Source of the DNA: Dimorphilus gyrociliatus
Lineage: Eukaryota; Animalia; Annelida
Length of the DNA stretch: 64,000 bases
Direction of reading: 5' to 3'
Assembly: GCA_904063045.1 (NCBI GenBank)
Contig: CAJFCJ010000003.1
Location: 930,001 to 994,000 of the forward strand
The position numbers and the translations under genes are program-made. Of this stretch, positions 1,073-51,200 are shown in pieces. The notes beneath the pieces were generated by a model, which saw only the letters and a list, made by a program, of their open reading frames with translations, searched no databases and was not told where the DNA came from. Position 1 is the stretch's first letter, and each line of letters starts with the position of its first letter.

Positions 1073-2841
1073 TATTTTCTAAAGAAAAATATTTATGTCT
1101 ACTATGCGTTATTAGTGTGTAGAATAAATTAGGACAATGTTATTGTAACCATGTATGCCATGATTATTAACAGAAGGGACTCTCGGTGATTTAGTCTGTC
1201 TCTTGTATTTTTTACAAAAGATGTTGCATCATTAGGAGACTTTAGAAAAGTGACAAACGTGACGAGAAAACTCTTTTATACTTAAAAGGTTGTATGGTCT
1301 ATAATTTTTCCTCACAAAAAGCTAGTCTTTGTATATCTATTTTGGAGAGCGTTTGCTTGTAAAAAGAGACGCCTCGATATATACATGTCCAAAAAACGTA
1401 CTCTTTTATAATATTGCACAAACAGACAGAAAAAGAAATTTTACATCTAAGACAGACTTGTCGTATTGCTTTTAAAAGTGCAATACGAATTCGCGGAATC
1501 TAGGATAATTATTCTTCAATTTCGAGGTTTCTTCCTCAGTTTAAGCTCTAATAATCGTTCCTTTAGTCAATCTAGTATGTCAACTGGAAAAAAATTGCAG
1601 TAGGGTATAATTTAAATCAAGGTTGGCGAAGTCCATTTCGTAGTAAATTACAAATAAGTAAAAGGACAGAAATGTAAACAATATCAATACCTTTTATTAC
1701 TATATTCGTTTATAGAAAAGAATTTATTCCAGCCAAGCGTACGACATCTTGCGGATCTCGTAAATAAGAAACCCCACCCTAGACTTCTTAAATAATATCT
1801 CCTTGCAAGAAAAAAATCTAAGAAAAAGAGAAAACCTGCCTAGCGTATGCCTATTAAAAGGAAAAAAATGAGTTCCATTAGTAAGCTCTATTCGCCGATC
1901 ACAAGATTCGATAATTTATTATGAATATTTAAAGTAGCATTCTTATATTAAATCACTTTCACTATTAGTGAAATGAGGTTTTTGTTAAATGCGGCAGAAG
2001 TATATGAAGATGATTCCTAGTAAGATAGAAATGCAGAAATTGACAAACTAGTAGAGCTAATCGATTTGTACGTCCTGTGTTAGTAATGCTGGGGAAAATG
2101 ACCGAGAAATTAAAGAGAAAATCAATGACAGCTGTCGGACGGAGAATCATGGAGTTTCTTTGAAATTTTAGTGATATGGTCAACGACCACGATTTATCTT
2201 TAAATTTATATATTCCAATTCAATCTAAGGAACACACTTTCGAATAAGGAGAACGTTGAGACTTGCAGTCGTCAAAGTCATATTGAAGGTCAAATGGTGA
2301 AATAGAAGAGCAGCTCAGTTCTCGGCGGACTCTTTATGGTACTTGTCGACACTAATTTTATCTGGTAAAACGTTAACGTTTTTAATATCTCTGGAGAGAT
2401 TCTCATCCTGTAAAGATCCCCCTCTCTCTCTCTCGCTCTCTCTTCATTTATTGAGAAACTACTCTAAATCAATTTTAAATTTTAAATATAGAAATAAAAA
2501 AGTTTAAATAAAATGAATACAAAATACCAGAGGGAATAAAAAATTGGAAATGAAAGGAGTAACGAGCTTTATACCCTTAAACAAAATATGATATTCAATC
2601 CAACTGCAAAGGTCAAGTCAAATGACATTGCGAAAAAAAAAGTCATCAGCGTTAATTTATAGGAATATCTATCGGGCAGGAAGATAAGTTGGACTTGTCG
2701 TTAATATGGGAAACAAATTGGATTTAATAAAATTGAATTATATTCTATTGTGAAACTGTAACATCTATTGAAAACAGAACAACTGATATTAATCCTTTAC
2801 AAGCTTTGCAATCGTGATTTTTCTCTCGTTATGTTTTTTTC

Positions 2842-6610: not shown

Positions 6611-9039
6611 ATTTGTTACTTTACTATTAATCGTAGAGTAGGAACGTACTGAAAAGCATTTCGAAACCGTTTGAAACCTTATGTATACGAAGGCTGACTC
6701 AGAAAGAGGGCAACAGCGCCACCTGTATCGATTTTCTCGTTCCGCTTATCGATTTGAGCTATTTTCGGCTTGTTTTCGACTCAAGTCTAAATTTGGTTCA
6801 AATTTCTACGATATTATCAAAGGATTTCTTATAATTAATGAATTAGTTTAATCATTTAGAATATTTCCAGCTAAGATAATAAGATTTCTAAAAATAAACA
6901 AACCTGAATTGATACTCATTAAAAAAAAAATCTTCATGCATCTGTTTCACTAGAAGGATTTAAAAATTGATTTATGAAATTTCTAGTGAAATTGAATAAA
7001 ATGACCTTGAAATGTACTGTAACCTGTAACAAATACAAACACAAGGAACTTTGCAATAATTGCTTACAAGTACAAGAGGGGATTGCGTGCTAAATAAAAA
7101 GGTGATCTGATTGGTATCGTTAATATACACGAAGAAAAAATGAAAAAGAGGAAGAGCAGGACACTCAAACTATGTAACAAACACTAATCCTTCTCTCTGC
7201 ATCTCTTCTATTTTGTCCTGTATTTTTCTTTTTGTATACAAATATAAAATTACTAACCTTTTTGTTTTTCTATAAAAAAAAAAGAAAATCTACACAGACG
7301 ATTATTAAAAAGAAACCTATTGTTTATACATATCTATAAGTACACAAACACATAATATGTCTATATTATAAACATTTTTACTGTTTTTCTAGGTACAGAA
7401 TACGCTTATAAATGTTATATTTTTTATATAAAAGAGTAAAATATATTAAGATGGGGTTTCCTTCTTTTATTTCATATTTCTTTCTTTTGCGACGATTATT
7501 CCCCAGGATTGATAATCTAATTAAATGATTCTTTTATCTCTATTTCATATTCTTTACGTTGGCTATTATTCTCTGTTGTATTTGAAATTCAATCGATAAA
7601 TAGTTTTTCCAAGAAAAACTTCAGAACGAGGCCTACAACGTGACATAATCGCTAGGGGATTTATCTGTCACTTGGGCAATTTTCCCTTCCCTCCCCCCCC
7701 TTCATCCTAAACATATTCATTAAGAACAAACTAAAGACACAACTAGAAGACGTGATTTGAGTTACGAATCTTTAACTTTTCTCCCCTTTTATTTGTATCA
7801 GAAATTTCTTTCTTTTACTTCTTTTATCGTCCACGAAGATATTTCGCAAGAAAGTAATTCATTTATTGCCTTAGGTTATAGTTTGTATTGGGTTAAACTA
7901 ACTGTAGTACAATAATTTGCAGTTTATTATCAATTCCCTTTCTTATTTTTTACGACAACAGAGTAAGAAGACTGTAAGGTAGTACAGTTTAAAACCTTTC
8001 ATGTCAAAAGGGAATACTATGCCATTGACGTTAGAAAATTATATCAGAAGTGTGTTTGTCACTTGCAGTTTATCCTTTCTTCATATTCTCTTTTCTATTT
8101 AAACTCTTTTCTTTTCCCGTTATCATTAATTCTTCGTTTTCTCTCTGTTCGCGTTCTCTGTAGGTTCTAATAAATTATCTCTATAAATTAAGTTGTACTG
8201 CAAACAAGGATAAATTCTAATCTCGACATCTGACCGATTTTCATACAAATACTTAAGAGCTGTATTTTGTATATAAATGTCTCTCTTTTTTCTCTCTGTT
8301 CATTGATCTTCAAACTAAAGCGTTTTTCTCTTAAAGTATATTTATCACCCAGCTTAAAATAGCGGCATATTTTTACTCTTTTCCTGCATTCTCTTTACTC
8401 TACGTCTATTTTTTTCCTATTTGGTTTTTTTTTATAAAGCTATTTAATTCATTACAACTCTGTATGAATGACTAATCAATTTTCTATATTTATTTCAAAG
8501 AGAAAAGGTCATCGATAAGCCAATCACCAAAGTTACGTAAGAATCGTACTACATGAGATAAAAAATCCTCTTATATTATTAATGATGCGTTCTAAAAACG
8601 TGACACTTAAAAAAAAGTTTGTATCTGTCTTTTATCTTTAACTGTAATTAATTCACAGGTTTGGCTTCCTTTGGACTCTATAACATATGCGAATTGTTAA
8701 TATTTTACTGCTAGTAAAATAATTATAATAAGATAAAATTTTTAAGGTAACAGTAGTTCTTTAGCACATTCATTTCAATACATTACATTGAAACCTGTCT
8801 TAATAATATTCTAATTAGGCCTAGGAGTAAAAAATGAGAAATTTCTATTCCATATTCCTCGTTTTTTCTCTCTCTAACTACGTAGATTCGTTAATCCTGT
8901 AAAAAAAATTCCAAGTATCTTACAGCTTAGTTACAAAAAACTAGTATTAGAAGTGTTGAATAAAACAATTTTTAACAATACATATAAATATAAGCTTGGT
9001 TATGCCATTCAACTTTTAAGCAAAATAAGCCTTTGCCTC

Positions 9040-9040
<1 letters not shown>

Positions 9041-9092
<52 letters not shown>

Positions 9093-9152
9093 TTCTCTCT
9101 TTCTCTCTTTCCCCCCTTCTCTCTCTCTCTCTTTCCCCCCTTCTCTCTCTCT
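9041..9152. repeat. (CTGT)n/(CT)n microsatellite with duplicated TTCCCCCCTTCTCTCTCTCT unit
   Basis: Directly visible; it explains the overlapping low-complexity ORFs at 8953-9242. Confidence 0.9.
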
Positions 9153-12100
9153 CACCACAAATACGCGAATTTCGAAGAAATCATAAATAAACCTGCGCAA
9201 TATGTTTACGAGTGCAAGCTTGATATTGTATTGTAAAAACAAGACATTAGGAGGGAGACAGCTGTAATTAGAATAATTATATTATTAAAATATCATCTAT
9301 GGCATAGTTCTGTACCATTTTTTTGAAGTTATATGCTATTTAATTTAAAAATTAGCGTTTTAGATAGATAAATATATCGTGTTCTGTAAAGAATAGCTAT
9401 TTGCTAGACGTATTTATAAAGTTATATTAATATTTAATATCGTTTTCTCAAGGTTATGCTAAGTAAAAGTATAAATGATTAAAATGAGGAAAATCTATGT
9501 TATTTCCCCTTTCCCTTGAATTTTCTTTTTATAGCATCTCATCATCTGTTGACCGCTAATTTAATACATCTAAATCAAAGACAATCTAGAAGGATAAGTT
9601 CTGTATTATAGGACTAAAAGCCAACTTAAAAAATTTCGACATAAAAAAAGGATAGCAAGAAAGAGAATGAGGAGCAGATAGAGTGCAAAGATAGAGATTT
9701 TTCTAGAACATTCTAGTATTCGTACGAATTCAAGATAACTACACAATTCTAGAAAAAAAGCGGTCAGCCAACAACCTAAATGAAAGACGTTAAAGTATTT
9801 ATCCTACTTTTAGGCCTATTGTGTAATATAATATCTCCTTACGAGGATGGCTTCATTTAGGCCCAGCAATAAAATACAACCTAAGTTTCCTATTTCACGG
9901 CATACAAACAATAATGTTTACTACTATGAATACTATTACAAAAACACTAGGTGTCGCTTCAACATTGGTAAGATAGTAAACAAACTATAGGTTTGTAACA
10001 AAAACTCCATCTATCGTATAAAGGAAATGACTTGGAAAAAAAATTAAAAAAAACAGCAATAATAAGAGAACAATAAGATTCGAATTACAGTTTCATTTAA
10101 AAGATCAAATAACATTTAATATACATAATAATATATATCTCACGAAAGTTTGAATATAGTCATATTATTCTCATGAATAAATTATATAATCATTTATTCT
10201 AAGAGCGTGAGTGATTATATTGTATATACAGTATACATTACCTATATTATAATTTATCTAAATCTGAACAAAAAGACTATCTAAAATAAGTATAAAACAA
10301 TTTATCATTTGTTAAGTTTTCTCCTTTGGAATAGACCTATAAAAATCAACTTTTAACAAATATCATTTTGTTCAATTAATACATTCTGAATCGAATTAGA
10401 GAGAGAGAGAGAGACAGAACAGTTCAATTCAATTAAATTAATTTTAATAGATAAAGGTTTATAATCAAAGTTTTCATTATTCCGATAATGCGTAATTTCG
10501 TTGAAAAGTATGATAGATAGAACTTCAAGAAACAGAGTGTTCTTTTAAATAAACTATACAATATACTCTCTTTCTTAATTAATGAAGCAAAAATAATTAT
10601 AGCGCTTCTTATTACTTCATTAATCCCTTTATGAAAATAAAATAGATATGTAGACAAAGTATAACTAATTTAATAAATTGTTAACCCTAAATATAAAGAA
10701 TAACGCGTAAATTATGTTGACATTTCATGACCATTCGATTATCTTTATGGAATATAATTTCTTAAAAGAAAAAAAATTACGTCATTACGTCATATTCGTT
10801 AATTATAGAACAATCGAATGTTTGTCTATACTATATATTTTGTTGAGGAAGGAAAAGAAGAAGGAAAGGAAAAGCTAAATAAAAATCCTTTTCTACTATT
10901 CTTAATATAAATCTTTGGAGGGAGACATATTAAAAAATTAACAAATTTTATGTTAATTAGAGGCCATAAGTATAATTGACTTTAACCAAGCTTTTCATCA
11001 TGTTTTTTCCCTTAAGAAAATAATAACACGGAAGATAAGGGAAGAGGAAGCAGATATACAGACTAAAAGAAAGGGAAAACATGTAAAGAGAGTAGGATAA
11101 GAGTATTAGTAGATATGTTTAATACGCCAATAAAAAAAGAGCCTCTAGACTAAGAAAAAGAAAAAGAAGACAGCCTCTTGTTAGTTTATTGGGAAATTTA
11201 AAACTATAACGCTTTAGTTTGATGAGGAAAAGCAGTTTTTTTCCCCTATCTAAACACAAACATAAACTGTTCTATATTGTTCTATATTAAAGAATTAGAA
11301 TTTTTTTTTCTTTAAATTATGAATTATTATTTAGCAGAAATCCTCTAAGCACAAACAATGTTACCTAATGCATTTATAAATAGTATATTTAATGATTTTG
11401 TTTCCCTATGTTAGTTATTTAGCAAACCTTTTCTCTTTTTTTGTCTAACATGACAACTATACTTTTACGTGGGAGGAAATAAAGAAAAGGCCTATAACCA
11501 TCTAAAGAGGTGTTACAGAAGTCCCTGGATTAGACTATTATCTCTGAAATTGTAACAATTAAATAATATACCACCTACCAATAGATGGTATATGTGTCTG
11601 AAATACGTTTTTTGTGGATGAGTTTGTGTTTTGCTTTGAATATATGTTTTAGTGCTTTTGTATTCATTCTTATTCCTTTCTGTTTAAAATGAATATAGAC
11701 TGTATAGTGCATACTTTTTATCATATATATTTACATATATACAGTCTACAGTATATATATTTATATAAGAGGAAGAAATAGCACTTAACAATTAAAAGAG
11801 GTAAAAAATGAAGAGAAAATAACAAAAAAATGATAAACTATTGTTTTCATTGTAAAATAGCGTCTCTTTATTGCTGTTAGCGTCTTTCGTTAAAACAACA
11901 CTAAATGTATCAATATAATGAGAAAATAAAATCTGCTTGCTGTAAAAAATGCAGAGAATAATCAAAGCATCGATTGGTTACCATAACAACGGCGTATAAT
12001 AAGATTTACGACAAGGAAAAGTAGGGTATAAATTCTATATTATTACCCTACTTTTATCTGCTTTCTTTTTTAAAAAAATACCCATATATTAATTACGCTA

Positions 12101-20966: not shown

Positions 20967-22533
20967 TTAGCCGTAATTTAGACGTTCAAAATAGTTATAA
21001 TCGATAAGAAAAGCAGCACCAATCATAATTGCTTTATTCATAACTGATACCGATTTGTCGTGAACTGTTTTATTATGAATAGAATTTTAATTCATTAATT
21101 AATTTTTATTTACTAATATAAATAATGTAACTAACTTAAAATCGTAAAATCATTGGCTTCGGCACAAACTTCTCTAAATCCTCCCCAGTGTTTCTGAATA
21201 TCGGCCACTTCGTAAGAATCCCTCAATACCTATAATTATAAAGCTAATCAATCCCTCATTTCTGAGTAAAATTATCTTTTTTTTCATCAAAATCTGAGGA
21301 ATAGGTAATAAAAACCAAACCCTAAAATGCACATCAGTATAACATTTACTGTGGCAACAGTCTCCTATTATAGTATATAAAAGGTTTCCATCTGTGTCAT
21401 GAATTTCGTATGTAGGTATACACATAGTCCACCTAGTTAAATAGAAAAATAACCTTATCAGCCATAACATGTATTATTTTTTATTTATGCGTTTAAAAAA
21501 GGAAGCGTCTAGAATTCCTACATCTCTTTAATAGTTGCTACTAATTGTCCAGGTGGGCAATAGATTTCCATCCTTTGAAGACAACATGGACAAAGAAAAC
21601 CTTGGCAATTAAGTGGTCTATTTAGTGCTATGACTGGTATTTCACCATTTGCACTGGATGTAGAGATTTCCATACGTAAAGATCGAAATATATTACAACA
21701 ATATCGCTGTAAACACTCAGATTCTGTAGCAAAAAACAAAAAAATCTTTCTCAAGATATTCATATTAATAAATAGTACAATTAATTATGTCTTTTTTTTA
21801 TATATATATTTTTATTAATTTTTTTTACCTTCCTTAGCATAAAATAATTGCTGTTCTGTATCATTGCAGATTTTATAACGATTACATTTTTCCAGTACAG
21901 TTAAAACTGTTAAAATATATAATAGAAAAATCTGTTACTAATTTTACGTTTTTGTTTTTGTTTTTCAATTCATAAAAATATAGATATAATAAAAAATATA
22001 TATAACGCAAATGTTATTCATTCGAAAGTGTTAAATGCAATTAATAACGATTACTTCCTTTTCGTATAATATAAAAAATATATTATTTTTTTCAGATTTA
22101 CATTCATGAAACTTCTATTCAATTGAACTTGTAATGCTCACACTGACATAAAAACACGATTTATCAGTATTTTAATGTATATACACTGTATATATATATA
22201 TATATATATATACAGTATAGTCATTAAAATACTAATAAATGGCATATCGTATATACTGTATATATTAGTATATAAAGTTAACACCCCCGTATTGGTTTAT
22301 TAGTTACCTTCCACTAGCTGAACTTCTTGATGAATGTGAAATTTATCTACATTAGCTATAAGATCCAATCCACTTGGATTCGAAGGTATAACTTCAGACG
22401 TAGGCTGAGTTTGTATCACATTGCAATCATCAGTTTCATCCTTTAAATCTAATCCTTGATTTGAATATTCTTCCGCTTCCAATGAATGTTTTTCATCGCT
22501 TATTGGCTCTTCAGTTATGACTTGTTCGCTCAT
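20967..22533 (-). CDS. PLSCR: Phospholipid scramblase, paralog A (269 aa, 6 exons)
   Basis: Exons 22533-22308, 21906-21829, 21723-21522, 21432-21321, 21229-21136 and 21064-20967, with phases closing correctly. Motifs: HQEVQLVE, NRYKI, ESECLQRYCC, RPLNCQGFLCPCCLQ, and C-terminal KAIMIGAAFLIDYNYFE. Confidence 0.95.
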
Positions 22534-22605
22534 TTTTCATAAAATAAAAATTTTGTATACATATGAAAACAAGCGTATTTTAGCTTGTTCCAGCACAAAC
22601 AACCA

Positions 22606-25421: not shown

Positions 25422-26736
25422 TTAATCATTGTGCTCAAAGTAATTAAAATCTATTAGGAAGGTTGCTCCAAGTAGAATAGCTTTGTTTGTTACGGATTCC
25501 GATTTGTCGTTAACTGTATTTCATTAAATAATTAAGATAATCAACTCGGATATTAATTCTTGAAATTAACTACTTACAAATAATTGAAAAATCATTTGCT
25601 TTTCCGCATACTTCTCTAAATCCTCCCCAATGTTTTTGAATATCTCCGATTTCCATGTCTCCTTTCAGGATCTGTTCAATATTTGTATACGAAATTGTAA
25701 AATACATGGAAAGTGGTGTTTAGAGGATACATACTTTGAAATGAACATCTGTACAACACTTACACACGCAGCAATCTCCAACAATTTGAAATAGTAGGGA
25801 ACCATTTGCATCGTAAATCTCGTATTTTGGAATACAGCAAGTCCACCTGAACGCAAGATCCGAATTCATTATACTCAAACCAATTGAATGGTGAAATATA
25901 CAAATACTTACACTTCTTTAATCGTTGCCGCCAGTTTCCCAATTGGAAATTGTATTTCCATCACTTGTAGGCAACATGGGCAACAGCATCCTTGACAATT
26001 TCGTGGTCGATTCAAGAATATCAGAGGAACTTCTCCTGCAGTTGTTACAGTTGAAATGTTCATTGTCATCGCACGAATAGGACCACAGCATTGTCTCTCG
26101 CAACATTCAGATTCTTTAAATTAATAAATACTTATTGTAAAGTTTAACGAGTATTGAGGAGATTACCTTCTCTAGCATAGAGTATTTGCTGGTCTTCGTC
26201 ATTGCAGATTTGATAGCGATTCCGTCTTTCCCACGAAGTGAAGACTATATAGGTATAAGAAATTAGAGGCTTTCAGATTATCGAAATTCAATATATGATT
26301 CACTTTTTCCTAATGTCTCAATCAATCATAAATGTAATAAGGAAAAAGAAAAATGTTCTCCTGTTTTGAAAATATCTAGCTTAGGTGTCACTAACTTTAA
26401 TGGTACTTAGCTTCTTTATAAATACTTAATGACAGTTTCTTAAATAAACAATATCGAAGATCTAACTTAACAAGATATATGGATTTTTGCATTAACAGCG
26501 ATACCTTCAATTAGATGTACTTCTTGATGAACGTGTATCTTTTGTAAATTGGCCAACATTTCTGCTCCACTGGCCTGGGTAGGTTGGTAACTTCCTTGCA
26601 CAGGTTGCATCTGAACGGCATTTCCACCATATCCAGAATTATATTGAGTATTATAAGCTGAATTAGAATATCCTCCTGCTTGATAAGGTGGTGGAGGATT
26701 ATTAGAAGGTTGTTCAGTTATTGGAGATTTGCTCAT
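25422..26736 (-). CDS. PLSCR: Phospholipid scramblase, paralog B (269 aa, 6 exons)
   Basis: Exons 26736-26505, 26244-26167, 26113-25912, 25846-25735, 25671-25578 and 25513-25422. The ATG is at 26736; the ORF track start at 26751 is a TTG. Pro/Tyr-rich N-terminus with PPPPY; CQGCCCPCCLQ; KAILLGATFLIDFNYFE. Confidence 0.95.
25429..26245. repeat. Near-identical duplicated block, copy 1 (partner 29829-30645, offset 4400)
   Basis: Only three differences seen by eye over about 815 bp, introns included (25461/29861, 25736/30136, 26222/30622). Confidence 0.93.
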
Positions 26737-26813
26737 TTTCGAAAAATTCAAAAATAATGTATATAAGCAAAAGCCTTGTTTTTTTTACCATATGAGACAA
26801 CTCCTACCTTTAA

Positions 26814-26821
26814 TCACGTGA
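26814..26821. promoter_or_regulatory. TCACGTGA E-box upstream of scramblase B
   Basis: 78 nt upstream of the ATG at 26736. A nearby CCCCACCTATTGG (CCAAT on the minus strand) is shared with paralog C. Confidence 0.6.
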
Positions 26822-27734
26822 TTATTTCTTCCCCACCTATTGGTTAAGGCTCTCATAGCTTGGAAAATCAATTCTGTTTTATCAACGGTCTTGTTTGTTT
26901 ATAGAAAAGGTTGGAATCGTTGTTTAGCGTATTCAATACGTTTTTAAAATGAATATGCTTTTTTCGTATAAAACAATGAGAGTTCATAAGATTTCCTTAA
27001 GAGAAATGGTAGTATTATATAATAAGCAGGAGACAAATATAAGAGATAAAAACATCTGTTTCATCTGAGAATAGAATAGTGAAAAGTGGAAAATTTAATT
27101 TATTATTAAAAGAAGAGAAAAGATAAAACATTAAAGTAAAGGCTGAAAAAATTCTTTTGAAATGTTAAACATTCTTAATTAACATTATAATATCGAATGT
27201 AATGAAAGTCTATGTACCTGAGTTGATTACGTTGCTTATTACTTCAAAATGTAGTGTTTAAAAGTTTCTGACAGTAGTATTCTATAAATGAAATAGAAAT
27301 TGAAAATTTTCAGAAATATTTTCAAATTGGTTCACTAAATCATTAAGTAGATAATTAAAATATGAATTTATAAACTAAAGTTAAATGTATAAATCAATAA
27401 GATAACTATATTGGAATTATTATAATTTCTTCTCTATTTTTGGTTTCATGCTAATGAAAAGCTTTTACTATGTTATCACCACTGTTTAAATATTATATTT
27501 AACTTTCTAAGTTTTTGTTATTTGGACAGTTGAATCAGGAGTTACTTTATCAATATTCTCTTTTTTTCTGATAGTTTATTGATAATTAAACAGTTTTAAA
27601 CTTCAGTAGTTATCTATTAATTATAACAGTTCTCTATACAGCTGCTTCAATTAGCTATATTTAATCAGTTTCCTGTTTATACACTAGGAAATGCATAAAT
27701 AGCGGTCATATTGTACTTTTATCATTCTTTAAGC

Positions 27735-28848
27735 ATGAGGATCCTTTTGGCTCTCGCTGCAATTTTACAGTAAAATTTAGTAAAAATCTTTTATATACAA
27801 CTTTTACATCATACTTTATTTCAGTTTGGTTCTAGCTTTTCCACATAATGAACATCCGAATCAGAAAAAGAATACAGCAGTAGGAGATTCTGGAAATAAT
27901 TATCCTGATTTTTCCTCACATCATAATCATGCAGATACAAATGATTTGCATCCTTATGCAGAAGAGTGTCGACTCTACTTTCAAAATCACAATGCCTACT
28001 CAAATGGATACAATGAAGAGTTGAAGAAAAAATGTTCTTCTTTTATAGACGAGTCTAGTGAGATATTAGCATCCAAATCTGGTTCAGGGTCTGGTTCAGG
28101 CTCTGGTTATGGTTCAGGTTCCGGGTCTGGTTCAGGCTCCGGTTCAGGCTCTGGTTCTGGTTCAGGTTCCGGCTCTGGTTCAGGCTCCGGTTCAGGCTCT
28201 GGTTCTGGTTCTGGTTCAGGCTCTGGTTCAGGCTCCGGTTCAGGCTCTGGTTCTGGTTCTGGTTCAGGCTCCGGTTCAGGCTCTGGTTCTGGTTCTGGTT
28301 CCGGGTCTGGATCAGGCTCCGGCTCAGGCTCTGGGTCCGGTTCAGGTTCCGGCTCTGGTTCTGGCTCTGGTTCTGGCTCAGGATCTGGCTCTGGATCTGG
28401 TTCTGGATCAAGATCTGGTTCTGGCTCTGGTTCTGGTTCCGGGTCTGGATCTGGTTCTGGATCTGGATCAGGCTCTGGCTCCGGCTCTGGTTCTGGTTCC
28501 GGGTCTGGATCTGGTTCTGGGTCTGGTTCCGGGTCTGGATCAGGCTTCGGCTCAGGCTCTGGGTCCGGTTCAGGCTCTGGTTCTGGCTCCGGCTCTGGAT
28601 CTGGATCCGGCTCAGGTTCTGGGTCCGGTTCAGGCTCTGGATCTGGATCAGGCTCTGGATCCGGCTCTGGTTCAGGCTTAGATGTTAATCCTGAACCAAT
28701 TCCAGATTTGGGGTATGAAGTTGATCCTTGGATACTTAAAAGAAGATGCAGATTTAGATATAGATTCGGTAGAAAAAGATGGATTTGTCGCTTAAGAAAA
28801 AAATTTCGACCTAAGTCAAAGCTTACTTGGCGAAGAAATTACTGGTGA
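27735..28848 (+). CDS. Secreted Ser-Gly repeat protein with cationic aromatic C-terminus (352 aa, 2 exons)
   Basis: Exon 27735-27769, a 55-nt GT-AG intron and exon 27825-28848 give the signal peptide [18 protein letters not shown]. This is followed by a polar domain with 2 Cys, a 200-aa (SG)n tract, and the tail [36 protein letters not shown]. Confidence 0.88.
28078..28677 (+). repeat. Coding hexamer repeat (TCN GGN) x about 100
   Basis: 600 nt equals 200 codons, with three non-S/G codons (Y, R, F). Variation is almost all at third codon positions, which supports the SG reading frame. Confidence 0.97.
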
Positions 28849-29818
28849 AATATTTAATTGTGATGAAATTGATGTAATATTAGCAATTGAATGATATTGA
28901 AAATCTGTTGAATAATTATAAAAATAAATGAATGAAAAGCAATCGAAGAAAAATATTCGGTATAAAAATAGTGACACTGATAAACATTAGATAATCTTTG
29001 TAACTTGAATAGAAATAAGTAAAAAACATATTGAAAAAAAGCTTAGCGTATTAGAGAGTCCAGTTTGAGCATTATCATAAGACATTAAAAATATTAAGCG
29101 TATAGTAAAAGCCTCATTATAGTGATTCAAATTAGCGCCATTTTTATCTAGTATTTGTAAATTGAATTAGAGAACTATGAAAAATGTAAGAAGAAAGAGT
29201 ATCTTATATATTTGATTTTACATATAAATACAACAGTTTCTTAAGAACCCTAGATTTCTCTATTTACTTGACAGCCTCTTCTAATTGTTAATTACTCGAT
29301 GCAAATAGCTCTTCTCAACATCTCCTTCACCTTTGTTTTTACAAATAAAAATATAGTAATTAACAGCTCTTAATTAATTAATTCAATCTATATAAAACCT
29401 TCATAGATTGTCAAATATAGATATGACAGGTACACACGCAAACTTTTTAGTAATAATGTTAATATAAACCATTAGAAATAAAAAAAATTAAGCATTCAGT
29501 TTATGTTTATTTTATAATGAAAAGTAAAACTGCAGTTATTTATCTTTAATATCACTGAGGATTGAATATAAAATCGATAAAACTCTTCAAAAGAAGAAAA
29601 CGAAAATATTGCATATTACACAAATGCCTTCAATCTTTTCTTCTGTAAATATTAATTGGAAAAAATAATTAGCCAGATTAATTTATAATAAAAAGCATAA
29701 ATAAAAAATCTCATTTATACTCTACATAGAAGAACACACTTGTTTTTACAAGCTTAGACAGATGATGACAAGGTTTTCTTATCAAAACTGTAAATTTTAA
29801 TTATGTAATAACATATTA

Positions 29819-31180
29819 TTAGTTGTCGTTGTGCTCAAAGTAATTAAAATCTATTAGGAAAGTTGCTCCAAGTAGAATAGCTTTGTTTGTTACGGATTCC
29901 GATTTGTCGTTAACTGTATTTCATTAAATAATTAAGATAATCAACTCGGATATTAATTCTTGAAATTAACTACTTACAAATAATTGAAAAATCATTTGCT
30001 TTTCCGCATACTTCTCTAAATCCTCCCCAATGTTTTTGAATATCTCCGATTTCCATGTCTCCTTTCAGGATCTGTTCAATATTTGTATACGAAATTGTAA
30101 AATACATGGAAAGTGGTGTTTAGAGGATACATACTCTGAAATGAACATCTGTACAACACTTACACACGCAGCAATCTCCAACAATTTGAAATAGTAGGGA
30201 ACCATTTGCATCGTAAATCTCGTATTTTGGAATACAGCAAGTCCACCTGAACGCAAGATCCGAATTCATTATACTCAAACCAATTGAATGGTGAAATATA
30301 CAAATACTTACACTTCTTTAATCGTTGCCGCCAGTTTCCCAATTGGAAATTGTATTTCCATCACTTGTAGGCAACATGGGCAACAGCATCCTTGACAATT
30401 TCGTGGTCGATTCAAGAATATCAGAGGAACTTCTCCTGCAGTTGTTACAGTTGAAATGTTCATTGTCATCGCACGAATAGGACCACAGCATTGTCTCTCG
30501 CAACATTCAGATTCTTTAAATTAATAAATACTTATTGTAAAGTTTAACGAGTATTGAGGAGATTACCTTCTCTAGCATAGAGTATTTGCTGGTCTTCGTC
30601 ATTGCAGATTTGATAGCGATTTCGTCTTTCCCACGAAGTGAAGACTGTCAGTAAAAGAGGAATAATATAATTTACTTTTATATACAAATTATATTCATTT
30701 TAATGCAGAATTGTTGGGTCAAATAGCATTTGGCCTGTATTTAGAACACCCTTCACCTAAAATATCATAACAAGACAATATGTAGTAAAGAAGGCTTTTT
30801 AGTCTTTTTTAATATTTTGAAAGTAACGCATGCTAATTTTTTTTATGTTTATTTTATATAAAAATTTCAGTCAAAAGTGTTTCTTAAATAAACAATATCG
30901 AAGATCTAACTTAACAAGATATATAGATTTTTGCATTAACAGCGATACCTTCAATTAGATGTACTTCTTGATGAACGTGTATCTTTTGTAAATTGGCCAA
31001 CATCTCTGCTCCACTGGCCGGGGTAGGTTGGTAACTTCCTGTAGTAGGTTGCATCTGTATAGCATTTCCACTAAGTCCAGAACTGTATTGAGTGTTATAT
31101 GCTGAATTAGAGTATCCTTCTGCTTGATAAGGTGGTGGAGGATTATTAGAAGGTTGTTCAGTTATTGGAGATTTGCTCAT
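29819..31180 (-). CDS. PLSCR: Phospholipid scramblase, paralog C (270 aa, 6 exons)
   Basis: Exons 31180-30949, 30644-30567, 30513-30312, 30246-30135, 30071-29978 and 29913-29819. Nearly identical to paralog B outside exon 1. Confidence 0.95.
29829..30645. repeat. Near-identical duplicated block, copy 2 (partner 25429-26245)
   Basis: Same alignment as copy 1. Confidence 0.93.
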
Positions 31181-31255
31181 TTTCGAAAAATTCAAAAATA
31201 ATGTATATAAGCAAAAGCCTTGTTTTTTACCAAATGAATCGAGTGGTACAAATGA

Positions 31256-31263
31256 TCACGTGA
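31256..31263. promoter_or_regulatory. TCACGTGA E-box upstream of scramblase C
   Basis: 76 nt upstream of the ATG at 31180. Reads GTCACGTGAT on the minus strand, one base from the CLEAR consensus GTCACGTGAC. Confidence 0.6.
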
Positions 31264-31850
31264 CTATTTCCCCCACCTATTGGTATCAACGTGAATAACA
31301 AGAGAAATCAATTCTTTTTTATCAATACTATCTTCAATGTTGTACAACAGGTGGCGTTAATGTCTAATATAAAAAATATATAAAGTTCACTTTGTTAAAC
31401 TTTCAGAAGGTACTCTCAATGATGATGGCTTTAAAAAATCAGTTGATCTGTATTTCGTAGAAAGTGTTCATTAAGTGATTAATTCAGAATAAAATGATAT
31501 TAACCATTATTTATTTATTATATACAGTGTAAAAGTATTAAAAAGTAGTTATATTGTATATTAATATTCAAGATAATATTGTTTCGAGTGTGAATGATTC
31601 TATTAAAAGAGTTGAATGGAAAATTTGAATGTAAATAATAATTAATCAGATTAAATGATCTCTTTACATTATGTAATAAAAAGTGTATTTTTATCTGATA
31701 ATATAATTTTTAAATTGAATAAAGTAAGGAAACGAGAATAAATTAGTCATAAAAATAACTTTAGATATATATTTAAGTACAATAAAAATCAATAATAAGG
31801 ACAGATAATCCTTTATCAACTCCACTTTGTAATGGTAAAATTGTCTATTT

Positions 31851-33070
31851 TCAGCTATTATCCATATTAGAAAGAATTCTTACAAACTTCTTTCTTATTA
31901 TATTATTAGGTGAGAAAATCCGCAAAAATTGGACTAATTTTCCATAAAATCCCAAGTAGTAAACGCTTTTTGGGTACTTTCTGGAAACTGCTTTAAGATA
32001 GCAATTTGCAACGTCATCGCTAGAGAGTAGGAAAGATGGCATTGAAGTTTGAGAGAATTTCTTCAAATTTTCATATTCTATACAAAATATATAGAATTAG
32101 ACAACAGTATAAGTGTATAGATAATATATAATAACAGTATTTACTTTTATGAAAAAGCAGCTTTGATTCATAATCAGTTTTTGATATATGATCACTTTCA
32201 TTCCATGCCTTTTTCCATTTTTCATGCATATTGAATGTCATGTTTGTTCTTATATAACCGTGTTGAATGTCAATGCTGTGTATTCCAAAGTCGCCTAATT
32301 CAGGCCTAAAAAACATAGTTATTATAATAAATTATAAAAAGTGGTTTTCTAGGAAATGTTGAGGTTTTATTCTATGAACCTTGTCGACATAATCAAGCCT
32401 TCTAAAGCCATTTTACTCGTGCAATAAGGAGATAAGTGAGGAAGTGGAAGAGTAACCTCACTGGTCGTGTTTGTAATTATTCTTCCTTTGCTCTTTTTCA
32501 ATAATGGTAAAAAGGTGTGCAAAATATTTAAATGACCATAGAAATTTATATCTAATGATCTTATATAATCGTCTTTCTTTAGCCAATCAAACGGTCCAAT
32601 TTTGTCCATCGATCCTACGTTATTTATTATAGCCCACAAAGCTGATATAAAATGTATTATTAATTAACAGAAATAAACGTATATATTCTGTTAAGCTAAA
32701 TACCCGATTGATCATCAATGAGGCTGAGAACAACTCTCTTAGCATCTGTTATACTATTCATATCGTTAACATCTACTCTTATAACATGAAAATTATATCC
32801 AGAGAATTCTTCTTGTAATGTCTTTTCAGCATTTTCCGTTAAACAAGTTCCAATGACTTTAAAACCGGCGTTAGTTAATTTTTTCGCGGTAGTAAAGCCT
32901 ATTGAACTATCGCATCCAATAATTAATACATACTTTCCTTCCAAATTATCAATTTTTTTCATATACCGATAGTATTTACCATAAAGAACAGCTGTAGAAA
33001 GAATAAGCGAAGATGATAACGCAATTCGAAACTGCATTTCCTTTATGTATTGATGGCTGTCGAACGTCAT
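31851..33070 (-). CDS. Short-chain dehydrogenase/reductase, RDH / 17-beta-HSD (SDR9C)-like (338 aa, 4 exons)
   Basis: Exons 33070-32704, 32641-32380, 32305-32145 and 32077-31851, phases consistent. N-terminal hydrophobic anchor; IGCDSSIGF (compare TGCDSGFG); LWAIINNVG; LPLLKKSKGRII; catalytic YCTSK. Confidence 0.92.
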
Positions 33071-33557: not shown

Positions 33558-35160
33558 ATGAATATTATAGCTAATTATATTATTTTAGCATTAGCTATTT
33601 TTCAAAGTTTTCATATCCAAGTATTCTTCATTACAGAATTAACATTTTTTAAAATGTCCGTGTCTCAAGGTATGTTTTTATACTTAATATTTTATATTTT
33701 ATTCAAAATTAGCTATTAATATATTTTAGGCCTAAATTTGATTTAAATGTAGTTAATTAATAAACGAATGACCAAACTGTGACTTTTTAAATAGTTTTTC
33801 AACATTATCTTTACAAAAAGATGAATTCGTGTCTAAAGCATATTATCTTTACAATGCTGTACACAGTATATGCTATATTTAAATACGTACAGTTTTCTGT
33901 TTGCTATACATATATTGCAAGATTATGCTATACCTATTTTAGCAAAAATTTATTGAACAATGACGATTATTTCGTTATAAAACAATAAATTTAGCATTGT
34001 TTTCTAATTAAATATGTTATTTTTGATTGGAACAGAGAATAAAGGTGATACAGGTAAGAACACTTCAATTTAATTAAAAGTTGTAAGCTAGATAGACTTT
34101 TCTGTTTTATATTGCTTTTATTTAATATACATATCATTGTGTTTAGGAGATACTGGTAGATCGGGAGGAAAAGGTCTTCCTGGTTCACCCGGACAAAAAG
34201 GTATCAAGGGTGTTGCTGGTTTAATGGGTCCTCCTGGTTCCACTGGTTCTACTGGTGAAATTGGTCCCATTGGTCCACGGGGTTCTCCTGGTCCCACTGG
34301 TCCTACTGGTGTAACTGGTGAAATTGGTCCAACGGGTCCTCATGGTCCCACTGGTTTTACTGGTAAAATTGGTCCAATGGGTCCTCGTGGTCCCACTGGT
34401 TCTACCGGTTTCATTGGTCCCCCTGGTCCTATAGGCCATTATGGATATACTGGTGCAACTGGATTTCAAGGCCCAAGGGGACAAAAAGGAGACAGAGGCT
34501 CTAAAGGTGATAATGGTTCTCCTGGAGGTAGAGTATGTTTAACATTAAAACAAGAAGATGTAAAGAAAGATATATACGAATTTAGGAGCAACTGGACCAA
34601 GAGGAGAAACTGGTTTCACAGGGTCAATTGGCTTTACTGGAGAACGGGGAGTTCCAGGACTGCCTGGCCGAATTGGGCAGGAGGGAAAAGTCGGGCCTCC
34701 AGGACCTCCAGGACCTGAATCTTCAATCAATTCTGACAGTTCACAAAGTAAGAAGAAAAAGGTTCAGTTTCTCTAAGCAAACTAAATATTAATTTATTTC
34801 TCAAGATTCAACAAGAAATGTCATAATTGCGTGTTCAATAGGACTATTTTTAATAATTATTATACATATTGGTTTTACCGTGACGCTATATAGAACCGTA
34901 AGTAAACTTAGGCGGAATCAAGAAACTATTATTCCAACTAGAGTCAGTATGCCTTTATAACGGAATTTCAATAAATAAGCTGTGTTCTTGCTATCGTAAA
35001 AATAGGTATATGAAATGTTAAAGAGGGAATATTCCAAGTTACCTGAAAAATCTCATATCTACACAACTATTACAGAAGTTATAGAAGAAAAGAAGGAAGA
35101 AGATGGTACATCAACAGGACATTATATTCAGATATTGAGCTAGAAATGGAAAAAACTTGA
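33558..35160 (+). CDS. Collagen-like single-pass membrane protein (about 285 aa, about 57 Gly-X-Y triplets, C-terminal TM)
   Basis: Proposed exons 33558-33669, 34147-34527, 34586-34747, 34806-34897, 34980-35005 and 35076-35160. The Gly-X-Y exons and the TM exon ([24 protein letters not shown]) are well supported. The first exon, the donor at 34527 and the last two exons are less certain. Confidence 0.75.
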
Positions 35161-36115: not shown

Positions 36116-36168
<53 letters not shown>

Positions 36169-36187
36169 TATATATATATATATATAT
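36116..36187. repeat. (TA)n microsatellite
   Basis: Directly visible, just past the glypican stop codon. Confidence 0.95.
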
Positions 36188-48200: not shown

Positions 48201-51200
48201 CGCTCTCATAAAAGGAATTCTCCTGCTCCTAATATGTTAATTTAAGCGTATAACAATGAACTACGTTATTACGACTTTGTTACAAGTCATAGAGTTTACG
48301 TAGGCTTAATATGTTTAAAATATTTCGGCTATGTAAAGGCCTAATAAAACATTTTTATTTAACTAAAGTTTAAATTTCTCCCATTTCATACAAGCTTATT
48401 TCTTCTAGGGATTGCATAAGTATACAATTTTTTTGCAAAATTCTCCCCCTTTTTTCTCCTAAATTGAAGGCCTATACATATAGTGTATATGTATTTCTTT
48501 TTACACAAAGTTGCCTATCGTATACTTTTTTATGTTAAAAAAACGAGCAAAAACTTTAATCTATCACTCTTCTTCGCTATCATTTAACGTCCGGTATATA
48601 TCATTTTATTATTATACATATGCTCTTGTCTATAATAATCTTATATAAATATATTTATTTATTTGAATAATCCCTTTTCTACTTACGGTTGTTATCTGTT
48701 GGTTATCTAGAAACTACTCGTTTCCTTATTAAATTAAGACTAAAAAGACTATATGTATATAGTATATTTCAAGTGGAAAATTAAGAAGATATACACAAGT
48801 AAAATGAAAGTACGTGGGAAAAATGAGAGGAGGAGTTGTAGACAGAGTATTATGATACAATTTAGGGGATTATCTAAATAATAATTACATAAATAGCGAA
48901 ACGGCTTAGTTTAAGCTCGTATAATATATCATTTAACGTAAAAATCTAATAATATTTCTATATGGGTAAAGTTAAGCCTTTTGTTGACATGAAATCAACC
49001 GGCTCTTATCCGGAATTAACCTCATTAGGAAAATTGTGTCTGATTAAGAAAGAAAAAAAATTCCAAGTTCCGGATTATCTAATGTATCTTAATTAAACAA
49101 TGTTTTTTTCCCTATATAGATTTGACATTGGAACTATTATATTTTCATCAATAATTCAGAATATATGGAAAACTTAATAAGGCGATGAACTATAAAGCAA
49201 TTATTATAGAATTTTATATATAATAAGTTGAATAAATAGAACTTGGACAATAAGAGAAAGAGAGAGTGAACGAAGAGGAATAAAGGGAGGGGGAGGGAGC
49301 AGTTTGCGAGGGGGAAAATCCATATAAGATTATCCTTATTGTTGATATGGCGGCTTTAGGGTCATTAACTAAATTACGTCTCTATAAATCGAATTCCCTG
49401 CTAAAAGTGCTTTTTAAGTAAATATTTTGGGACGTATGCATTATTTTTTTCGGGTTGACAGTTATAGGCCTAATTTTTTCACTTAACACAATATGCATTT
49501 TATGAATAATACATATATGTTGTGGTAAATTAACTTTTTTCCTTTTTCCCTTTGTTTATTAACCCTAAAAGGAGCTAGCAGCATTTATGAATTACCTATC
49601 TAGGTGATGGGGAAAAATGGTACTTACTGTCACGTACAACTTGCTAGAAGAGTCCATTACATTCAGTATAGCATCGCCAACTTTCTTATCAAATTCTACT
49701 ATGCTTGCTTGAATTAATCCTGCTTTAGTCGTGAAAAGTCGTAATGCTTCCAATCCTTTTGGATATACTTTTTTATACTTTTCGCTAGGATTTAAGCAGT
49801 TACGAGCCATAGTTAAACAAGCGTTTAGACAAGGTCTCTTTTCTATATCGTGGCATCTAGCGCAGTAGCGAACTTGAGTCATACCCTTCTTACAGTATTC
49901 AAGTTTTTCAGGAGCAGAGCGTAATAGATCATAATATTCATTTAACTTAGTCATAACTTTTCGAACACTTTGTAAAGTTGCCAAACTCCTGTGCATCGTT
50001 GACGAAGCTTCTTTATCTAACCGACCATAAGGGCGAAAAGGTTTACCCTGAACTGTTCTTATATTTCTTACGCAGTTGGAAAATTTGTGTTCAAATTTTT
50101 CCAAATTCATTACATTCTGCAGAACAAGAACAAACAGGTCGGAAAACAATTCTTCCGTGTTAACAGTAAATTTTGGTTTTGAATATTCATTAATATTCGA
50201 GTAGAACTTATTAACAACAGCATCCGACGATTTAGGAATGTTGAAAACCTTGTGTAAGCTCTTCTTTAAACGGTCTTTTGATTCTTCAAAAGTTGCAAGA
50301 ATAATGTCTGTAAGAAATATAAGAAATATATATATTTGGGCAAAAGAATAATTGTTTATAATATATAAAAAGGAGCGTTTTTTAAGCGTCTAATCAACAA
50401 TATTTCATATAACAACATGTTATTATCAAATAAGGCCTATTACATAGGTTTTTCTTTTTTTTACTATGTTTTTCAATTAGTTTCCAATCCAAATACTTGT
50501 TGGTGATAAGAAGTGGAATTTAGGGTAAGATAAATTACTTTATTGATAGACGAGCACAAATTTCATTTGGGTGTGTAGTAAAGTATTTACTGTAAGCTCT
50601 GATGATGGAGAAAAGTAACGTTTCCTCTAATTATAATTACTTCTATTTTATTGAGTACTAAATCAAGTTCAAACAAACATTTTTTTTAGTTTATTGAGTT
50701 CTTATTCTACGTCTGATACTAACTAGTTTAGTAAAATAAATAAAATTCCTATACTTTCTCTCTCTCTTCCTCTCTCTTCTTTCTTTTCTTAACTCTTTCT
50801 ATTTTTTCTCTTATTTATGTTTTTGGCCTATGGAGAATATTTTTACCTTATTTTGATTATAAATAACCCTAAAGTCGACCTTTTAATACAATTTCCTTCC
50901 TATTTTATACATATAGACAAAGAAACAGTTATATTTATACTGGCACGTTACAAAAGCCCTCTCTGCAAATATAAAGCGGATTTATAGAAAAAAGACGGAT
51001 TATTAATAATAAAAGGATCACTGTTTGTTAGGCGAAATCAACTGGAAACACGATAGAAAATGCTAAGGCCTATAAATCAAAAGCATCAGTCCGTTTTTGT
51101 TGGCAGACAAACTGGTAAAGTAAACCAATCATTTTACAATCTCTTCGTGGGAAATTTTCGAGGAAAGCCTAAAGATATTTCGTAATAAAAATAAAACAGG

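Follow-up and report, generated by a model that had tools for sequence, protein, structure and literature searches.

A putative secreted poly-Ser-Gly protein with a predicted polycationic hairpin tail in the annelid Dimorphilus gyrociliatus, possibly a serglycin-like glycosaminoglycan carrier

A window of 64,000 nt from the annelid Dimorphilus gyrociliatus (assembly GCA_904063045.1, contig CAJFCJ010000003.1, forward-strand positions 930,001 to 994,000; window positions are used below) contains, at 27735-28848 on the plus strand, a gene for a predicted secreted protein whose centre is an almost pure run of Ser-Gly dipeptides. A sequence-only reading of this DNA had proposed a gene with a 55-nt intron at this place, and direct inspection bears this out: a 35-nt exon carrying the ATG is followed by an intron of exactly 55 nt, near the median intron size of 66 bp reported for D. 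gyrociliatus (PMC7854359), and by a 1024-nt exon. Without splicing, the frame of exon 1 closes at a TAA after codon 12, and there is no in-frame ATG anywhere in exon 2, so that translation of the latter would be possible only through the exon 1 splice. A TATA-like box, an initiator-like element (Inr) and a polyadenylation signal were found in canonical positions as consensus matches that do not imply usage (Table 1), the initiator-like element fitting the Inr consensus, YYANWYY, perfectly. As far as can be judged from sequence, the locus is a real, lineage-restricted and apparently unannotated gene with a canonical two-exon anatomy.

Table 1. Features of the poly-Ser-Gly gene and of its predicted product, in window positions.
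Feature	Position	Strand	Remarks
TATA-like box ATAAATA	27695..27701	+	29 nt upstream of the Inr A; consensus match only, read directly
Initiator-like element TCATTCT	27722..27728	+	putative +1 at 27724; the 5' untranslated region would be 11 nt
Exon 1	27735..27769	+	ATG, 11 codons, then the first 2 nt of a His codon split by the intron; n- and h-regions of the signal peptide
Intron, phase 2	27770..27824	+	55 nt; GTAAAA start, pyrimidine-rich stretch, TTTCAG end; predicted splicing
Exon 2	27825..28848	+	340-codon open frame; TGA stop at 28846-28848
Signal peptide end, LVLA	27826..27837	+	predicted cleavage after V-L-A by the -3/-1 rule
Head domain	27838..28077	+	about 80 aa, His/Asn-rich, mildly acidic, two Cys
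Ser-Gly tract	28078..28677	+	200 codons with 98 SG dipeptides; interrupted by three single-base changes (Tyr, Arg, Phe)
Acidic linker	28678..28737	+	Pro-rich, 20 aa, net charge -5, last residues W-I-L
Predicted beta-hairpin	28729..28806	+	26 residues (C-terminal residues 18-43), net charge +13; AlphaFold2, single sequence
K-R-R tribasic motif	28738..28746	+	directly precedes the first tail Cys; candidate proprotein-convertase site, putative cleavage
Extreme C-terminus	28807..28845	+	13 aa, basic and aromatic, predicted unstructured (AlphaFold2)
AATAAA polyadenylation signal	28923..28928	+	75 nt past the stop

The predicted product has 352 aa, of which about 335 would remain after removal of the signal peptide, with a core of about 30 kDa, and the parts that the sequence-only reading had listed are all recognizable in it. 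The proposed signal peptide agrees with a leader formed by a basic residue, about 15 hydrophobic residues (mean Kyte-Doolittle hydropathy of the exon 1 leader, 2.45) and the V-L-A motif, exon 2 reading L-V-L-A-F-P after the split His codon. The head is indeed rich in His and Asn and contains a Cys pair (7 His, 11 Asn and 2 Cys in 84 aa of exon 2, with an isoelectric point of 5.7); an AlphaFold2 model of it, built without an alignment, is of low confidence (predicted local distance difference test, pLDDT, 53) and has two helices with one Cys on each. The expected tract of about 100 Ser-Gly is composed of 98 Ser, 99 Gly and one residue each of Tyr, Arg and Phe, which makes 197 of its 200 residues Ser or Gly, in alternation. 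Acidic clusters lie on both of its flanks, D-E-S-S-E directly before it and five Asp or Glu in 20 aa, then a Trp, after it. The short acidic linker and the very basic tail were also found as described: the 33 aa that follow K-R-R have a net charge of +15 and two Cys 12 residues apart, and the whole 56-aa C-terminus contains 18 Lys plus Arg and 2 Cys.

Over the 200 codons of the tract, departures from a TCT-GGT consensus number 1, 2 and 104 at codon positions 1, 2 and 3, respectively. With a neutral expectation that two thirds of the changes fall at codon positions 1-2, finding 104 of 107 departures at the third position has a binomial probability of 1e-45, or of 1e-8 if just 20 of these events were independent. 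Tandem Repeats Finder described the 600 nt as 50 copies of a 12-nt period with 79% matches and no indels. The third positions are near random within each codon class, save for a few block duplications (a 53-nt exact repeat at lag 48), and the variable position of the repeat is synonymous in the Ser-Gly frame only. Because the departures lie almost entirely at third positions and are synonymous in that single frame, the tract has been maintained as a Ser-Gly protein over a long period, and the heterogeneity of the third positions argues against slippage alone, which would have homogenised them. This pattern shows strong purifying selection on the Ser-Gly reading frame, and the tract is no neutral microsatellite.

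When the pattern (TCN-GGN)x5 was searched across the 77.9-Mb genome, 81 overlapping matches fell in the tract and one other true Ser-Gly run was found, (SG)16 on contig 5 (C5:4392000-4396000, ORFs 1551-1766 and 1803-2132, plus strand; ORF, open reading frame). Pattern matches on contigs C6 and C24 were rejected as Ser-Gly, being coded as Pro-Glu on the other strand. The (SG)16 stretch follows a Thr/Pro-rich mucin-like segment and Cys-rich exons, and its gene scored 17.9 bits against the Pfam Serglycin model, below the cut-off of 30; it is probably a small mucin or proteoglycan.

The protein had also been called an orphan, a status to be checked by searching for homologs with its non-repeat termini, and no relatives of the head or the tail were found. 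In the worm's own genome (77,897,245 bases in 349 contigs) neither has a paralogue at E<=10. The head, used alone and within a 340-aa query, gave no match in a word-index search of 5.8 billion protein clusters. An exhaustive HMMER search over 1.84 billion representatives produced a single head match, to a C2H2 zinc-finger repeat protein, which was rejected as spurious: its score is summed over four repeats, and BLASTP aligned 6-10 identical residues per stretch. The tail was covered in the large protein libraries only as part of the whole exon-2 product, for which 182 matches (<=72 bits) were discarded as compositional, the matching sequences being heterogeneous low-complexity and mostly unnamed proteins of metagenomic, bacterial or phage-derived origin. 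Neither head nor tail had a match in Pfam, PDB sequences, the ESM Atlas or JGI metagenome contigs. The orphan status of the protein is confirmed as far as the libraries searched reach; orphan low-complexity secreted proteins are common among invertebrates. As no self-match was detected in the protein collections searched, fragments of any length included, the gene seems to be unannotated, an omission that could be explained by repeat masking or by narrow expression (limited, for example, to dwarf males, to egg-laying females or to infected animals).

This absence from every public protein collection searched, together with the lack of relatives anywhere, is also what would be expected if there were no working gene today, but an untranscribed or recently silenced frame around an expanded hexanucleotide repeat, provided with splice and promoter-like signals by chance. 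A repeat of this kind is, moreover, open in six frames, as the Ser-Gly repeat proved to be. We consider this explanation very unlikely, because the 104 departures are synonymous in one frame only, no indel interrupts 600 nt of repeat, the signal-peptide exon is in the correct phase, and TATA, Inr and AATAAA are canonical, while repeat masking plausibly accounts for the missed annotation.

Beyond what the sequence-only reading had described, AlphaFold2 predicted that the basic tail forms an amphipathic beta-hairpin with its Cys residues opposite each other. In the model of the 56-aa C-terminus, strands at residues 18-29 and 32-43 are joined by a two-residue F-G turn, with a pLDDT of 84-86 over residues 21-40 and of 67 overall, and the register places Cys24 (28747) across from Cys37 (28786) on the opposite strand. 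One face of the predicted hairpin presents Lys or Arg at 10 of 12 positions and the other an aromatic residue, a hydrophobic residue or Cys at 9 of 12, a segregation that was reached in 986 of 100,000 composition-preserving shuffles (about 1%). A Foldseek search of the tail model against the PDB returned nothing below E=2, as expected for so small a motif. The tail is probably a discrete folded module, modelled as a disulfide-stapled, amphipathic, polycationic beta-hairpin preceded by K-R-R. Its three B-B-B clusters resemble heparin-binding motifs.

A folded tail opens a reading of the protein as a host-defence peptide precursor, which could compete with coacervation or complement it. If it competes, no glycosaminoglycan (GAG) would be involved: head, tract and linker would be a flexible, inert pro-region, and a cut at K-R-R would free the 33-residue, +15 hairpin to kill microbes through membrane damage, in such places as the epidermis, gut or cocoon. 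The order of signal peptide, pro-region, Lys/Arg-Arg and cationic C-terminal peptide is that of polychaete antimicrobial peptide (AMP) precursors, whose C-terminal parts measure 18-91 residues (PMC10745061). The BRICHOS-related precursors of arenicin, alvinellacin, capitellacin, abarenicin and the HfBRI peptides come from the same phylum and have a like layout (PMC10745061, PMC13001179), including a Lys/Arg-Arg dibasic site ahead of a cationic peptide at the C-terminus, which is matched here by the K-R-R at 28738-28746 and the +15 tail. Arenicin-1 and -2 are amphipathic one-disulfide beta-hairpins, the arenicin precursor being about 200 aa long (PMC13001179), and the amphipathic worm tail, with its cross-strand Cys, is predicted to adopt such a form. 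The acidic linker (-5) ahead of the cationic peptide also suits a defence peptide, and inducible expression could account for the absence of the gene from annotation.

There are, nevertheless, marked differences from these precursors. The worm protein lacks the BRICHOS domain that is the hallmark of the annelid family (no PF04089 match at E<=10, whether to the head or to the whole product), its pro-region is a Ser-Gly repeat, and its predicted hairpin, at 26 residues, exceeds theirs in length and is far more cationic. No sequence similarity of the tail to BRICHOS-related AMPs was found, nor to any solved AMP. The poly-Ser-Gly protein thus resembles the BRICHOS-AMP precursors in layout only. 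A net charge of +13 to +15 is well above that of typical beta-hairpin AMPs, and strict Ser-Gly at 197 of 200 residues is more than an inert spacer would need; for these reasons we regard a defence peptide precursor that carries no GAG as unlikely. A single BRICHOS locus was found in the genome (C8:997814-997975, plus strand, 33.9 bits, within C8:996314-999475). The exons beside this match encode no obvious cationic C-terminal peptide, and a classical annelid BRICHOS-AMP gene is not evident there.

The strict alternation of the tract calls for a cause, as Ala, Thr or Asn would be tolerated in a simple flexible spacer. Two known causes fit, recognition by xylosyltransferase or Gly-X sheet packing. 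We favour recognition because of the acidic bracketing with its Trp, the precedent of serglycin, the GAG enzymes of the host and the polycation fused beside the supposed polyanion. The role of Ser-Gly as the xylosyltransferase acceptor for GAGs, on which the sequence-only reading had relied, is upheld by a review that gives Ser-Gly as the GAG attachment site and lists repeated Ser-Gly, acidic clusters close by and a neighbouring Trp as features stimulating chain assembly (PMC4598785). Serglycin is the sole well-known natural protein with consecutive Ser-Gly, repeats that have been termed "quite unique"; they bear heparin or chondroitin sulfate (CS), and cationic granule proteins are stored on them by electrostatic attraction (PMC4859157).

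The worm protein is like serglycin (PF04360) in being a small protein of the secretory pathway built around a continuous Ser-Gly run that aromatic residues occasionally break. In serglycin that run carries dense GAG chains and packs cationic cargo electrostatically (PMC4859157, PMC4013320), whereas GAG on the worm tract is a prediction. The two proteins share no sequence relationship, and as the family profile has no match to the exon-2 product, the poly-Ser-Gly protein is at best serglycin-like and no member of the family. They also differ in that the candidate cationic "cargo" of the worm protein is fused to its core, a cationic hairpin being absent from serglycin itself. The Ser-Gly run of serglycin is several-fold shorter than the 98 SG of the worm tract. 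In number of sites, the tract resembles, among SG-cluster proteoglycans, the CS-attachment domain of aggrecan, which likewise has about 100 Ser-Gly sites coded in one large exon. Aggrecan sites are spaced in repeats of roughly 19-20 aa with acidic residues, and aggrecan has globular lectin and link domains, whereas the sites of the worm protein are contiguous within 352 aa. More than 100 chains have been reported on the approximately 120 SG sites of aggrecan (PMC4859157).

The machinery that GAG assembly would require is encoded in the genome. One proteoglycan-type xylosyltransferase was found (Xylo_C, 70.9 bits, in an 840-aa open frame), and the CHGN family (chondroitin GalNAc-transferase/synthase) gave 14 exon-level matches at seven or more loci; Fam20-family genes are present as well. 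The CHGN gene set is large for a 78-Mb genome, and two of its members form an inverted pair on contig 19 (C19:2065853-2067493, minus strand, and C19:2080696-2082333, plus strand) with identical scores of 410.4 bits. Plausible places of use are at hand, since D. gyrociliatus lays cocoons and possesses glands of several types (PMC5101659).

The reading that we favour, tentatively and with rather less than even confidence, is that the protein carries GAG much as serglycin does, with a polyanion-binding hairpin that may also be set free as a defence peptide. The tract would serve as an array of xylosyltransferase acceptor sites, bracketed by the acidic clusters and the downstream Trp, and many chondroitin- or heparan-type chains attached to it would create a dense polyanionic brush. 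Within the gland cell, the polyanion-binding cationic hairpin would be neutralised by GAG chains of its own or of neighbouring molecules, which would allow compact packing in granules. After secretion, the tail could cross-link the brushes into a gel (a mucus, cocoon or adhesive matrix), or it could be cut at K-R-R to act as a membrane-active host-defence peptide, and these two fates would not exclude each other. The narrower proposal of a "self-packaging" fusion, in which the Ser-Gly GAG brush condenses its own toxic polycationic hairpin in the gland cell to give, after secretion, a self-crosslinked antimicrobial gel (mucus or cocoon jelly) or a peptide released at K-R-R, seems to us distinctly doubtful.

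Several observations weigh against a GAG carrier. In SULF2, the acidic cluster is essential and Ser-Gly without it is unused, and added SG repeats lowered CS occupancy, with assembly stalled at mono-xylose (PMC13405426). Most of the worm tract is far from any acidic residue, with none in its interior. The Pfam Serglycin model has no match to the exon-2 product, even at E<=10, and no transcript-derived, annotation or protein trace of the gene was found in any public protein set searched. The hairpin comes from a single-sequence AlphaFold2 model (mean pLDDT 67) with no Foldseek analogue, and its turn contains an internal G-R-K-R that is a possible cut site for the same convertases. Strict Gly-X alternation, finally, would equally suit a silk-like sheet. 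The proteoglycan and coacervate interpretation put forward in the sequence-only reading is partly supported: its anatomy and orphan status are correct, and joining a polyanion to a polycation is physically plausible. Against it, Ser-Gly alone proved insufficient in experiments (PMC13405426), and its poly-phosphoserine variant is weakened by a tract that lacks S-x-E.

The alternation also leads to the second known cause, sheet packing, under which the product would be an unglycosylated structural protein: the tract would be a silk-like beta-sheet former, or an entropic, elastomeric spacer, in the cocoon wall, the cuticle or adhesive threads, and the His-rich head, by metal coordination, and the cationic tail, by electrostatic binding to an anionic matrix, would be its end-anchors. 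Silk-type sheets require a strict Gly-X alternation, which holds at 197 of 200 residues of the tract; the GAGAGS blocks of Bombyx fibroin similarly alternate Gly with a small residue, silk genes likewise show codon heterogeneity in their long repeats, and Lustrin A of abalone has a Gly/Ser "extensor" domain followed by a basic domain. Consecutive Ser-Gly has been called "essentially a silk-like sequence" in a proteoglycan review (PMC4859157), and this is a cocoon-laying species with several gland types (PMC5101659). On the other hand, the silk and Lustrin proteins are much larger, multi-domain and abundant, no fibre or nacre context is known for this worm, and a tract of 200 residues is short for a fibre. 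A bulk product should, in addition, be highly expressed and hence annotated, of which there is no trace in the public protein sets searched, and no paralogues or gene family occur in the worm's own genome, unlike in most structural protein sets. We judge a structural protein of this sort distinctly unlikely.

The Fam20-family genes bear on yet another alternative, in which secretory kinases would phosphorylate the Ser residues and the resulting polyanion would pair with the cationic tail or with divalent cations into an adhesive or coacervate, as in tube-worm cement. Sandcastle-worm cement, likewise secreted by an annelid and formed as a coacervate from a Ser-rich polyanion matched to polycations, is an applicable analogy, and the S-x-S-x-S spacing of the tract could permit hierarchical phosphorylation at S-x-pS, a preference of Fam20C. 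The cement, however, has its anion and its cation on separate proteins, with Ser runs rather than Ser-Gly, and Gly at +1 is atypical of the known poly-phosphoserine cement proteins. The worm tract, by comparison with the cement, has no priming motif for secretory kinases, as no S-x-E site lies inside it or at its C-terminal end, and the Fam20 matches may be of the xylose kinase type. Such a phosphoprotein is, in our estimation, highly improbable.

The window is AT-rich (about 30% G+C), and the poly-Ser-Gly gene lies in a 2.9-kb spacer of unique sequence that separates two tandem minus-strand paralogues (25426-26885 and 29826-31325) that are 1.46-kb duplicates, 99.5% identical over 821 bp and 89% identical over the next 454 bp. 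The first coding exon of this neighbouring gene is Pro/Gln/Tyr-rich with a PPPPY motif, no Pfam match was obtained for the exons tried, and an older copy lies at about 20986-22536. Near-identical copies of the PPxY gene with unrelated spacers suggest gene conversion. An origin of the poly-Ser-Gly gene inside a recent segmental duplication was rejected, the spacer being unique and free of remnants of the neighbouring short-chain dehydrogenase (SDR) exons. The SDR gene itself (31851-33070, minus strand, with an adh_short N-terminal exon at 32696-33070) is found directly downstream of the third copy of the PPxY gene. A collagen triple-helix ORF with internal 45/54-nt repeats (34137-34718, plus strand; Pfam Collagen, E=2.4e-20) lies 5 kb downstream of the poly-Ser-Gly gene, and a glypican exon (49592-50149, minus strand; Pfam Glypican, E=4e-10) places a heparan-sulfate proteoglycan core gene in the window. 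Long dinucleotide microsatellites, (CT)n and (AT)n, are located at 9037-9153 and 36116-36187.

On present evidence the poly-Ser-Gly protein varies on known themes, and how much interest it deserves is for experiments to decide. If it is not expressed, the locus is merely a curious constrained repeat ORF; as it stands, it shows that repeat-rich secreted genes can escape standard annotation even in a well-studied compact genome. The tail would represent a new way of making beta-hairpin peptides in annelids, one that dispenses with BRICHOS. A glycanated tract would make the protein an analogue of serglycin from outside the vertebrates and without homology to it, with about 100 contiguous acceptor sites, and a natural system in which to see how xylosyltransferase deals with sites without acidic neighbours. 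The fused polycationic hairpin would make it a compact single-gene model for charge-driven packing, gelation or coacervation, and if the self-packaging fusion is true, an invertebrate would have arrived by convergence at a counterpart of serglycin plus its cargo, one bearing the longest contiguous GAG-acceptor array known.

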